DNA of 63,037 nucleotides, the filler included, from Reticulomyxa filosa (taxonomy: Eukaryota; Protista; Foraminifera), in assembly GCA_000512085.1 (NCBI GenBank). It is 19 parts of 19 records of this genome, joined end to end, with 100 filler letters (N's around TTAATTAATTAA, not from the genome) between each part and the next. Parts side by side here need not be neighbours in the genome. Positions count along the whole stretch, not along the records: positions 2,161 to 6,696 come from ASPP01028329.1; 18 more parts are not named here. One strand, written 5' to 3'. Numbering within the stretch: the first letter of the stretch is position 1; each line of letters opens with the position of its first letter. Of this stretch, positions 2,161 through 7,326 are shown piece by piece. The position numbers and the translations under genes were made by a program. A model generated the notes under the pieces. The model was given only the letters and a program-made list of their open reading frames with translations. It ran no database searches and was not told the origin of the DNA.

Positions 2161-2581
2161 ATCAAGTTCAATTTGCTTAGCAAAAACAGAAGAAGTTGGT
2201 AAGGGTTCATAGTCAAAATGCCTCAACTGGACAAGTGCTAAAAAGTTCATTTTTTTTAAAAAAACACTTGGAAAAACCTTTTACTACAATTTTTAAACAG
2301 AAAAAGATGCGCCAGCGTGTCATTTCATTTTTGTAGAGTAAACTAATTTTTTTCTGTTTCAAATCAATAAAATTAATGGCTTTGGTTTAATAACTATTGA
2401 TTTGCAGATTTACAGTTGATAACAAGTAAGACATATGTTTCTTGAACTTTTAAACTATTTTGTCTTTTAGAAGCTTTTAAAAGTCCAAAGTTATGAAATA
2501 CATAACTAATTGTATGGTTTAATGAACAAGTTAAGATACCCTATCTATGGGCAAAAAAAATTATTTTCAAATCGTGGTTCA

Positions 2582-5500
2582 TCAATGACGTTTTGATCGC
2601 TTTTCGTCCATTTTCACCACTTTATCTTCAATTTTTAAGTCTTCATTTACAACAAATGTACGAATTTGTCGTGGTGATAAAGTTGTCACTGTTCCTTGAG
2701 TGGCTGCGGTCTTTTTCTTTCCATTGACAACTCGGACGTTTCCATCTTCGTCCACAATGTTCCATTGCAATTTATGCAAGTTTGCCAAAGGTAGGTTGGC
2801 TGTCAATGTCATTTCTGTTACTTGATTGACAGGTACGACATTTGGATTAAATATTGTACTCAAATTAATAGTTTCATCAACACTCCTGTTTGTTTTTTTT
2901 CAAGCAACAACATTGACATATATTTAACATTTGTGCGAGAGTACTGGTACAAATAAAAAGATTTATTTGTAAGCAATTATAATTACCATTGTGCATTTTC
3001 TCCAACTTCAAACATATGTTGCAATTGCAAAATGAGTCCTTGGTTATAGTTTAATCCATTGTAGGCATATCGCAATTCTTGCAAATGGATGTTACTTGGT
3101 AGTCCTTGTGAATAATTGCTACTTATTGCAGTCCAAGATACACCATATTTGCTTGTCCAGCTGCTGATGGAAGAAGCGAGCCCATAAAATTTGGTGGCAC
3201 CATAATGTTGAATTTGATGCAATCTTCTGGACAAATACGAGACTTCTTCACTGGCATCATAAGTTACAAAGATGCGTGGTTCAATATGCGTTGTTTCATT
3301 GAGAACTTCTCCAACACCTCTGCCGTCATCACTCAAACATCGGCGATGCAACATCAACTCCATTTCTCCGCTACGCAAACTAGCTACTCCATGCGCTTGG
3401 TTTACAATGGTCGCAAAGCGATAGTCGTCGCCGGAGTCGCTGATATAGGTTTGCGAAGCTGTTGGATAATAATTGGCTCCCAAACGTTCGTCGAGATTGG
3501 GATTGTACGTTCGTTCGACATATTCCAATGCATTTTGACAGGTATACATCACTCCGCTGCTATCTAACGAGGTTCTCCAGCGAGTGACAAATTCTGCACC
3601 TTGATCCATTGGACCCAAATGAACCTCAACCTATGTTGCGTCATTTTTACAGATTCACAATGGTTTTGTAAGATAAAAAACAAAGATGAATATCATCCCG
3701 ACTTAACGTCAACATATTTCAGGTCGTCAACAAAGTCTCCATTAAATACACGATACGTTTGTGAATAATTTGTTTGCCACACTTGTTGCATTTCACTTAC
3801 TAATGGACCTTCCAAAAATACGACATCGACAGGGGGGTCAATTGACTTGAAAATGAGGCCTCGCTCAAATGCAACATACGACACTTCATACGTAGCAGCA
3901 GAGCTCACAGCAGTTTCGGGGAAAACATTTAATCCAAAGCCTTTCTTTGAATTGTACACTGCAGTAGTCGCAACGAAAATCACACCACTTGATGGATCGG
4001 GAGATAATTGCCTCAACGAATATAACACCACAGGTTCATTCACCACAAATTCACTTGAATTGAAAGTAAAGTTCACTTTGATCACATTGGTGGTCTTTGC
4101 AGGAACGATGAATGTGGTCTTTCCACTTACAAGTAAGTCTAAATGTAAATGTAAATATGTCAAATTTGTGGTTTTATTGTATTTGATTCTTTCGTTTTAA
4201 AAACAGAAAGAGAAAAAAAATAAAAGTCATCACCATTGGAAGTGCTTGTGAGTGGATTCCAGGCCAACCAATCCAAATACACATTTTCATTCCAATTGCT
4301 ATTGGTGTCAATTCTTGAGATGGACACAGTTGCACTCGAGGTACTGGTTGTGGTGATTACAGTCGCGTAACTGGCTCCAGAGTTGCAATTGCTGCTGCGC
4401 ACAGACACCACAACTGAAGGTACGTCTGCATACATATTCTTTGGGAAATTGATTGTTACTTGTTTGGTCTGGGAGTTGGATTGACTTACAGCAACTGTGC
4501 CGTACTAATTTGTTTGTTTTTATTGTCATTATTCGTGTCCGATATAGTTGCATTTTGGAGTCACTCAAGTAATAATTCAAAAACAAAATGAATAAACAAA
4601 ATAAAAAAATACAAACTGTGGTTTGTCCATCATCGAAATTAAATTCATTTTGCTCATTGGAATCAAATACCAAAAAGTCGAAGGATGGATTTTGACCCCA
4701 ATTGGAACCATCAGCTCTCCAATAGCGATAAGTGAACTCTGCATTTTCGATACTGTAAGCACAAACAGTGGGAACAAAAGTGTCGTAATATTGTCCCTCG
4801 CCATGAGCCGCGACAATAAATCCCGGAGATGGATTCGTGCTATTGAAAGGCTTTCGGAACGCTAATATATTCGTCTGCTCTTGACTGCCGGATGACGTCA
4901 GAGTATATCGGTTATCTTGTGCAGGTCGGAAGATGTAAGCACCTGAGTTCTAAATACAAAACAAACATGTTTGAGTTATTATGAAAATGCAAGTGAATAT
5001 ATATATATTTTTTTATTTTTTATTTTTTTTTAAATCAAGAAATAAACTTGTAATCCATCAGAGTAAATTCCACCAGTTGGAGCATATTGGATCCATGTGT
5101 TATTCAAAACAAACTCTTGCTTCAATCCATTGTTTTGAAGTCCAGTTAAATAAACTCCCTTGGTCTTTTGGTCTTCAGTGAACGTCAGGGTATAATATCC
5201 GGTTCCAATTGTATACGTATCTGCTTGATCGTTTCGGAAGACGTCACGAGCATAACGAACCTTGGCCAAGTTCACTTTGGACGTGTCATTGGAAAGTTTG
5301 ACAAAGAACGTACTAAAAGACAACGGCGCCATGGTGGCTTTAAAAAACAAAATGTGGGTGCACGGATCATGGAAAGGTTGAGCATATTCGGTGACCGGAT
5401 TGATTTGAGACAAGACTTCTTCTCCTGTTGCATCGAACACTACCAAATTCGATATATTGGATGGTACTTGGATTACCTCGGTTACAGTCCTACGTGGATT

Positions 5501-6527
5501 AAAAGACAAGATTTTTGATTGCACCGAAACATTGTTTGTTTTTTTTTTTTGCAGTGACAATAATTACATTTCCATAAACACATACAAAACACGTATATTA
5601 AATAAAATAAAAAAAACTCAACCAAGCCAGACTGTTATACAACACAACAGCCAAGACGTTGTTGTTTGTCAAAGAGCTGATCAATGATTCATTTCGCACC
5701 AATGGGGGTATGTTGGAGCCTTTTTTCAAGAAATAGGGGGCAACTTGTTCAGTGAATGGTATCACTTTCTATATTTATATGTATGATTTTATTTTAAGTA
5801 CTGCAAAAAAAAAAAAAATTTATATATATGTATATATCACATTAAAAAAAAATTGGTATTTTTTTGTTAACATCAGTGCCTTGCTGCAACATATACATAT
5901 AATCATCAGTAGTATGTTGTGTAGCAGTCCCACTGACTCCGTCGTGGTGTTGGGCAGAATCAATGGCGTGTCGCAAGTAAGAAATATTGTTCATGATTGC
6001 AGTTTCATTGAAAACATTGGAATACGTGTTAAAAAAGTTCATGTTTTTAGCAAACGTGAACCATTGCTCTGCAGGTCTCATCACGTTTTCTCGAGAGCGG
6101 ATAAACTCTTTCAATTGTGGGCGGGATGTAAAGTATCCAGTCCACCACGCATGAGGACTATCATCGTAGGTGAAAAAGTCATTGGTCTCCAAGTTCCATG
6201 TCAAGTTCAACGCATGGACCGCGTGTACGTAATCCGCAAATGTGGAATAAATGACAGTCGCATTATACGTGTGATTACTGTTAATGTATTCCATGAGCTT
6301 GTCCATTTGTATCATTGACTGATAGGCGTTCTGATGCGCAAAATCACAGCCAAAAGGAATCAACACGTGCTCGTGGCGATACCATGAGCTTTTGGTTCGA
6401 GCATCACTCACAAACGACTCACCCAATTCAATGTAGTTGGTCGGATAAGAAGGAAGGCGTGGATCCGTTTGGATAAACGTTCCATCATAAAACGTTATCT
6501 CACTTGGACTGCAATAGCTTGATTCCT
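2582..6527 (-). CDS. GH38 lysosomal-type alpha-mannosidase (MAN2B-like), multi-exon, 5' truncated, with internal lectin-like insertion
   Basis: Motifs HVLIPFGCDF, WWTGYFTSRPQLK, QHHDGVSGT, VVLYNSLAW, SGAYIFRP, GPLVSEMQQ, ANYYP, GEMELMLHRRCLSDDGRGVGEVLNE, LQLQHMFEVGE and TLSPRQIRTF occur in correct order over about 9 exons. Stop at 2582-2584. Confidence 0.95.
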
Positions 6528-7326
6528 ATTTAATATATACACATATATGTATATATAACAATCATTATGTTACGCATGTACATTGATACATATACATATA
6601 TAAATATATATAGCAAAGAAAAGTAAGTGCAAACAGAAGATTAGAACAGCAAAGGGGGATATTGCACAGTGAGGATCAAACATTTATATAAAAAAANNNN
6701 NNNNNNNNNNNNNNNNNNNNNNNNNNNNNNNNNNNNNNNNTTAATTAATTAANNNNNNNNNNNNNNNNNNNNNNNNNNNNNNNNNNNNNNNNNNNNAACA
6801 ACAACAAGCAAAAACAATAATGCAACTACATTTCTTTTTTGATTACCTTTTAAAAAATGGAAAAAAAAAAAGTGAACACATTTTGTGATATCTTGTTAAG
6901 TTGTTATAACAATAATGTTTTTCTACATCCCACAAAATTGTGAAATCTACACCCCAAGAAATTTAAAAAGGACAAGTATAGCAATATTTCCACGAAAAAA
7001 GATAGAAGAAAAAAAAGCTGTTAGTCATAAGCATCGCTACAATAACATTAAAAAGAGCGATTTGTGTAATGTTTAAACTCAAAGTTTATGTGGTCTGTGA
7101 TTGTGTTATATAAGTTTTAAGTTTCTAATAAAAACATTTTGATATTTTAAAAACCCTACATGTTTAGAACTAATTTGCTGACATAACACCAAAAAGTGTG
7201 CATTTAATATTTTTAAACAAAACAGAGCTACATTGCTAAGCATCACTTTAAACCTAATTAACATTTTGTATTTGACATACAAAAATTGTTGTGGCTTTGT
7301 TTGTGTTTGTACCTAAAAAATTATTT

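Follow-up and report, generated by a model that had tools for sequence, protein, structure and literature searches.

A triple H-type-lectin-like module nested within a foraminiferal GH38 alpha-mannosidase

The stretch of DNA analysed here (hereafter the window) is 63,037 nucleotides long, filler included, and joins 19 parts of 19 records of the genome of the foraminifer Reticulomyxa filosa (GCA_000512085.1). Positions 2161–6696, which come from ASPP01028329.1, carry one minus-strand gene covering the 3' four-fifths of a GH38 alpha-mannosidase, visible as eight open stretches in the six-frame translation. The resulting model (Table 1) has eight exons totalling 3222 nt, i.e., 1074 codons with zero internal stops, and encodes the C-terminal 1074 residues of the enzyme; the gene is truncated at the 5' edge of the part, the first part of the catalytic domain and the nucleophile lying outside. 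All seven introns are of the GT..AG type and 77–133 nt long, with a GC content of 0.14–0.31 versus 0.37–0.45 in the exons, and all exon junctions abut exactly in the continuous proteins of homologs. The peptides quoted in a first-pass annotation of this locus were all found on the minus strand, at the places it had given. Exons were searched one by one, full-length context and folding were obtained from natural homologs, and the joined sequence served only for length and stop counts.

Judged by its sequence, the encoded protein is a foraminiferal acid alpha-mannosidase of the lysosomal type (LAMAN/jack bean). Three GH38 domains of Pfam occur in the expected order, all above their gathering scores: the end of Glyco_hydro_38N (6.7e-11, 42.5 bits versus a cut-off of 25) and Alpha-mann_mid (4.3e-16, 59.2 bits versus 31.1) on exon 1, and Glyco_hydro_38C (1.4e-14, 55.3 bits versus 25) on exon 7. 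Among PDB sequences, the matches of exon 1 to jack-bean 6b9o_A (2e-28) and of exon 7 to bovine LAMAN 1o7d_D (2.2e-18) outrank those to fly GMII (3.5e-18 and 1.6e-13), which points to the acid/lysosomal enzymes rather than to the Golgi or cytosolic ones; the best match of the family profile reaches 1e-54. Alignments to 6b9o, 1o7d and 1hty retain FGCDF, QHHD..GT and DDGRGVGE: FGCDF, with the acid/base Asp, aligns with jack-bean MGDDF; QHHDGVSGT, with the zinc His, aligns with jack-bean QHHDAVSGT; the exon 7 loop DDGRGVGE aligns with bovine DDARGVGE; and SGAYIFRP is aligned identically. The tyrosine of SGAY is taken to be Tyr727 of fly GMII, and its spacing to the active-site Arg, that of DDxRG in the same C-terminal domain, is consistent with this (164 residues in jack bean versus 149 in GMII). 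Tyr727 and Arg876 line the -1 site of the fly enzyme (PMC13204073, PMC10012049). Because the catalytic motifs visible in the part are intact and the nucleophile motif, which in the R. filosa gene lies 5' of the part, is carried by homologs P0002 (GWHIDPFGHS) and P0007 (GWHIDPSGHS), the protein is probably catalytically active, as an acid exo-alpha-mannosidase serving the digestive or lysosomal system.

The domain layout of GH38 acid mannosidases, which are textbook enzymes, is very stable, and the R. filosa protein has in common with 1O7D, 6B9O and human MAN2B1 the same Pfam domain set and order, as well as the visible catalytic motifs. It departs from them between SGAYIFRP (4946–4923, start of exon 4) and GPLVSEMQQ (3812–3786, exon 6). 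The first-pass annotation had put some 300 residues between SGAYIFRP and GPLVxEVxQ, as against a short gap in known enzymes, and the measured spacing, obtained by aligning the family profile to PDB sequences, agrees with it. The alignment of jack-bean 6b9p_A breaks off after SGAYIFRPN, at residue 630 and profile position 194, and picks up again with VSRSSVTRVTRGPLVDEVHQ at residue 638 and profile position 489, while the two break points of bovine LAMAN 1o7d_D are residues 66 and 71. The turn that follows SGAYIFRP in the jack-bean and bovine enzymes is thus 5–8 residues long, and in the foraminiferal protein it is replaced by ~295 residues bearing three extra domains (R1, R2 and R3). We regard it as nearly certain that this represents a ~295-residue insertion into the tip of the GH38 hairpin that starts with the SGAY strand. 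The insert starts in exon 4 after RPAQDNRY, takes in all of exon 5 and extends in exon 6 as far as VVFLEGPLVSEMQQ. As also proposed by the first-pass annotation, its three exons are in frame, a GT..AG intron of 112 nt separating R1 from R2 and one of 95 nt separating R2 from R3.

Table 1. Exons of the alpha-mannosidase gene in the window, and their amino-acid identity with the R. filosa paralog on ASPP01001807.1.
Feature	Positions	Strand	Content	Further evidence	Identity with paralog (%)
Exon 1	5872..6525	-	End of GH38 N-terminal catalytic domain and alpha-mannosidase middle domain; FGCDF, QHHDGVSGT		
Exon 2	5623..5768	-	Linker into the C-terminal beta domains (…VLYNSLAW)	GT..AG junctions; colinear with homologs	
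Exon 3	5048..5489	-	First beta-sandwich following the middle domain		65.5
Exon 4	4617..4949	-	NSGAYIFRPAQDNRY (GH38C active-site strand), then R1 (about 4877-4659)		73.9
Exon 5	4234..4504	-	R2 (core about 4459-4259), whose H-type-lectin likeness is the clearest		66.7
Exon 6	3708..4138	-	R3 (about 4124-3864), then return strand VVFLEGPLVSEMQQ and next GH38C strands		66.2
Exon 7	2987..3630	-	GH38 C-terminal domain core, with HRRCLSDDGRGVGE		84.6
Exon 8	2582..2885	-	Last beta domain; TGA stop at 2584-2582	Colinear with homolog C-termini (…PRQIRTFVVNED)	72.8

Relatives were sought by running HMMER with exon 6 against 1.84 billion cluster representatives, and of the 13 proteins retrieved, 11 are true relatives. 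The two others were rejected: P0003, an aciniform spidroin of Araneus (24 matched stretches, E 1e-41), as a compositional/repeat artefact of Ser/Thr/Val-rich strands, and P0012, a repeat protein (E 2.5e-4), as a compositional or repeat artefact. In all relatives of sufficient length, RPAQDNR is followed by 307–327 residues and then by GPLxxE. The named ones are ETO35260.1 and ETO09219.1 of R. filosa (67–68% identity over exon 6) and a protein of Bolivina argentea (EukProt), the remainder coming from ENA, JGI and Logan assemblies. So far, the architecture is confined to Foraminifera and to environmental members of the same family, and the rhizarian origin initially suggested for the gene holds, in that its nearest relatives are foraminiferal. 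As the two named genera are a monothalamid (Reticulomyxa) and a rotaliid (Bolivina), the insert probably predates the split of those two foraminiferal lineages.

At face value, exons 4–6 might stand outside the mannosidase mRNA, whether as a nested gene or as an annotation or assembly artefact, all the more so as the public models of the R. filosa paralogs are visibly mis-predicted. However, relatives hold the GH38 middle domain, R1–R3 and GH38C in single open reading frames (ORFs). Two environmental sequences, L002 (P0007, 1149 aa) and L003 (P0009, 1069 aa), encode the GH38 domains together with R1–R3 in one uninterrupted ORF (1149 and 1069 codons), so that the insert can be assigned to the enzyme without any assumption on splicing. 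Moreover, the introns are short, canonical and in frame, with junctions matching the relatives residue for residue, and dropping the insert exons would also remove both partners of the hairpin, SGAYIFRP on exon 4 and GPLVSEMQQ on exon 6. In practice, this alternative is refuted.

The two environmental loci (L002:723-4172, GC 0.25; L003:1717-4926, GC 0.33) are intronless from the middle domain to the C-terminus, while the R. filosa gene and its paralog have an intron in every inter-domain linker (phases 0, 0, 1, 0). The layout of one repeat per exon reported by the first-pass annotation therefore applies to the latter two genes and fails for the former two; it is lineage-specific and not evidence of exon shuffling. 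The paralog, located on ASPP01001807.1 (L001), shows 68.5% DNA identity over the same six exon blocks. From the exon-wise identities (Table 1), the insert is conserved to much the same degree as the beta domains on either side; the ratio of nonsynonymous to synonymous rates between the two copies could not be used, synonymous sites being saturated and dS undefined. Exon 7, with the GH38C core and the DDGRG loop (2987-3630 versus L001:2070-2711), is the most similar, at 84.6% versus 65–74% for the other exons. As for the public models, ETO35260.1 begins inside the insert and is devoid of the R1 exon, which lies upstream in the contig (L001:704-1036), and ETO09219.1 contains intron read-through, with runs such as FFFIIIIIII and KKKKNPFFLKK.

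Regarding the nature of the inserted domains, the clearest sequence signal comes from R2, which matches Pfam H_lectin (PF09458) over profile positions 2–66 of 67 (E 6.9e-4, 20.1 bits) and Gp53-like_C at 1.2e-3. The sub-threshold H_lectin match recurs at R2 in four homologs, P0006 (23.2 bits), P0010 (23.0 bits), P0002 and P0001 (17.9 and 15.1 bits). In the protein language model of the Atlas, the neighbours of R2 are H_lectin/Gp53-like_C clusters (0.95); those of R3, which is placed less strongly (0.92), are cnidarian and H_lectin clusters. In PHROGs, R2 is aligned with the C-terminal ends of tail proteins; a tblastn search of R2 against 50,697 phage records gave zero matches, and in a word-index protein search R2 had no match and the insert of P0008 matched only itself.

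Among the repeats of the R. filosa gene, BLASTP recovered nothing but a 15-residue match between the tails of R1 and R2 (E 0.009), with none for R3, so that profiles built from homologs were needed. These were cut from the homolog alignment and compared using hhalign, with 150 column shuffles per pair as a control. R1 and R2 align over 74 columns (92.8%, E 3.9e-7) with a score of 38.9 versus 9.0 +/- 2.0 for the shuffles (maximum 14.6), none of the 150 reaching it, and R2 and R3 score 23.0 over the first 40 columns versus 9.7 +/- 2.0 (maximum 17.2). Both scores exceeding the shuffle maxima, we consider the two links real. Exactly two cysteines of the insert are invariant across homologs, one in R1 (4766-4764, …PTVCAYS…; 7/7 sequences) and one in R2 (4423-4421, …SSNCNS…; 10/10), and R3 has none. 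As they occupy different positions in the fold, R1 and R2 could be linked by a disulfide between the domains.

Structural evidence was drawn from AlphaFold 2 (AF2) models of two natural homologs, used together with the family alignment. In P0008 (JGI, 996 aa), the mean predicted local distance difference test (pLDDT) is 51, yet the insert reaches 80–95 over residues about 340–620; in P0011 (Bolivina, 479 aa), the mean pLDDT is 71 and the predicted template modelling score (pTM) 0.60, with values of 75–96 for the insert (residues 183–455), where each repeat has six strands. When whole models were searched, matches to the helical middle domain or to the first beta domain dominated, and lectins came up only in the VIA second look, which gave the same picture in both models. 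R2 then matches Helix pomatia agglutinin (HPA; score 4.0–4.6, root-mean-square deviation (rmsd) 2.4–2.7 Å, 79–83 of about 100 residues), Helix aspersa agglutinin (HAA; 4.2–4.5, 2.5–2.7 Å, 81–84 of 101 residues), SLL-2 (3.7–3.8, 2.6–3.5 Å, 79–85 of 94 residues), discoidin I (3.9, 3.1 Å, 82 residues) and phage tailspike C-termini (LKA1 gp49; 4.6–5.2, 2.6–2.9 Å, 82–88 residues). R3 matches the R1 pyocin fibre foot (4.8–5.0, 2.4–2.5 Å, 89–91 residues), discoidin II (4.0–4.7, 2.8–3.1 Å, 89–90 residues), discoidin I (4.2–4.4, 3.0–3.4 Å, 88–91 residues) and AP22 gp54 (4.4, 2.7 Å, 92 residues). In the homolog models, R2 and R3 are thus six-stranded antiparallel beta-sandwiches superposable on HPA or the discoidins. 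HPA, HAA, SLL-2, the discoidins, the pyocin foot and the phage tailspike C-termini all belong to one fold class, which is trimeric (PMC6116203).

Several observations weigh against a lectin-like identity for the whole insert. No repeat reaches the H_lectin gathering score of 24 bits (best: 23.2 in a homolog, 20.1 in the R. filosa gene), and this holds for the R. filosa gene and the ten homologs scanned. R1 and R3 have no Pfam match, the similarity between R1 and R3 is not significant with hhalign and its shuffle controls, and sequence searches of the PDB returned no lectin (no meaningful match for exons 4, 5 and 6 with phmmer, GH38 entries only with the family profile). On the structural side, the modelled homologs are 33–45% identical to the exons of the R. 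filosa gene, their GH38 portions are poorly modelled in both cases, and none of the matches listed is to R1, which is assigned through its profile homology to R2. The core claim of the first-pass annotation, three H-type-lectin-like beta-sandwiches nested in an otherwise intact MAN2B1-type GH38, nevertheless stands, through Pfam and fold for R2, fold for R3 and homology to R2 for R1, and it is quite likely that all three repeats are H-lectin-like in fold.

The insert may also behave as a single module. The pTM of 0.60 obtained for P0011, although only ~59% of its residues are confident, suggests one rigid body. In a shape search of the Atlas, the two best rows (TM 0.49–0.51) are a Big_6/Big_13/H_lectin cluster from bacteria, at 307 residues, rmsd 4.6 Å and TM 0.51, and a Bacteroidota cluster combining Glyco_hydro_cc (PF11790) and H_lectin, at 288 residues and rmsd 4.7 Å, while three phage proteins of BFVD match the module over about 300 columns with a probability of 1.00. 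From these models, a pseudo-threefold packing of R1–R3 seems slightly favoured, and a single-chain pseudo-trimer is plausible. Fold matches of the module, which cover about 190–300 residues overall, further include single-chain pseudo-trimers, with the Epstein–Barr virus dUTPase and PCSK9's C-terminal domain among the structures retrieved. Another reading is a generic beta-sandwich array (resistin- or PCSK9-like, jelly-roll or Ig-like), whose H-lectin likeness would be a coincidence among small six-stranded sandwiches; we hold this to be very improbable.

Glycosidases bearing lectin-like modules, whether attached or internal, are already familiar. The PA14 domain of GH3 beta-glucosidases, for instance, is a nested carbohydrate-binding beta-sandwich that shapes substrate preference, but only one domain is present there, the fold differs and so does the GH family. 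H-type lectins (PF09458: HPA, HAA, coral SLL-2 and Dictyostelium discoidins I and II, through their C-terminal domain) are six-stranded beta-sandwiches of about 90–100 residues, like R2 and R3, which superpose on them in the homolog models with an rmsd of 2.4–3.5 Å over 79–91 residues. However, known H-type lectins are free-standing or terminal and homotrimeric, whereas the foraminiferal insert has three unlike in-chain copies nested in an enzyme domain. Similarly, the C-terminal domains of phage tail fibres and tailspikes and of R-type pyocins (6CXB/6CL5, 4RU4, 4RU5, 4Y9V; Gp53-like_C PF21882) are the C-termini of homotrimeric virus or bacteriocin fibres. The bacterial and phage chains with multiple H_lectin domains (ESM Atlas, BFVD) resemble the ~300-residue module in shape, and one cluster has a glycoside hydrolase, but the catalytic family is different, no eukaryote is involved and both sides of the comparison are predicted models. 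Literature searches on H-type lectins together with GH38 or mannosidases, and on mannosidases or lectins of Reticulomyxa, yielded no paper linking H-type lectins with GH38 or Reticulomyxa with this enzyme, and no description of this architecture, in keeping with the novelty raised by the first-pass annotation. Because H_lectin scores fall below the Pfam threshold, annotation based on Pfam would leave the lectin domains of these proteins unannotated; for P0008, the precomputed Pfam list has GH38 domains only, as expected from such scores.

Taken together, we consider that the gene is best explained as encoding an acid GH38 alpha-mannosidase with a nested triple H-lectin-like module, which would form a pseudo-trimeric carbohydrate-binding body tethering the enzyme, with a probability of roughly 0.7 for this reading as a whole. 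The tip of the beta-hairpin of the SGAY strand is replaced by a ~295-residue module of three diverged H-type-lectin-like six-stranded beta-sandwiches, which may pack into a compact body mimicking the homotrimer of free H-type lectins. Attached 10–20 residues past the active-site strand, it would act as a built-in carbohydrate-binding module holding the mannosidase to the glycans that ingested prey carries or to glycoproteins of the digestive vacuole, and the exo-mannosidase would thus act on a tethered substrate. On its own, the proposition that the insert binds sugar is tentative, its odds being even or just short of it.

The main rival reading is that R1–R3 keep the H-lectin-like fold but have lost sugar binding in favour of a structural role, such as oligomerisation, shielding from vacuolar proteases or the binding of a membrane protein or sorting receptor. 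In free H-type lectins, sugar is bound where identical protomers meet, and three unlike protomers need not retain such sites; the repeats have strongly diverged from one another and from Pfam H_lectin, R1 and R3 having lost most family signatures, and the similar three-lobed C-terminal domain of PCSK9 is a protein-binding module, not a lectin. On the other hand, the host protein is itself a glycosidase, a bacterial glycoside hydrolase + H_lectin cluster and phage receptor-binding proteins are among the nearest shapes for the whole module, both contexts in which carbohydrate recognition is typical, and deep foraminiferal lineages have kept the insert, with a conservation similar to that of the beta domains around it. 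Overall, we deem this loss of sugar binding unlikely. The carbohydrate-binding reading could also be taken further: a single-chain pseudo-trimeric H-type lectin would have arisen from the hairpin of the active-site Tyr in the ancestor of Foraminifera and would now serve as an extended substrate-recognition platform, redirecting a housekeeping exo-mannosidase to particular glycans of prey or shell matrix and altering the choice of substrates digested rather than just the place of attachment. We rate this extension as rather doubtful.

A few other features of the part can be mentioned. Simple repeats occur in the introns, with (AT)13 at 6586-6612, a run of 24 T at 5008-5031, an array of AAAAATAA at 4579-4615 and (TAAATG)2.8 at 4140-4156, and the intron 5' of exon 1 is rich in TATATG-type sequence. 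Past the mannosidase stop, the 3' flank (2161-2581) is AT-rich and has only short ORFs on either strand, no second gene being recognised there.

A module of three lectin-like domains nested beside an active-site strand, found from a monothalamid to a rotaliid, represents a clear lineage-specific innovation in the digestive glycobiology of a major group of phagotrophic protists. It offers a natural test case of a homotrimeric lectin turned into a single chain, and a system in which to ask how a nested binding module alters the substrate range of an exo-glycosidase.

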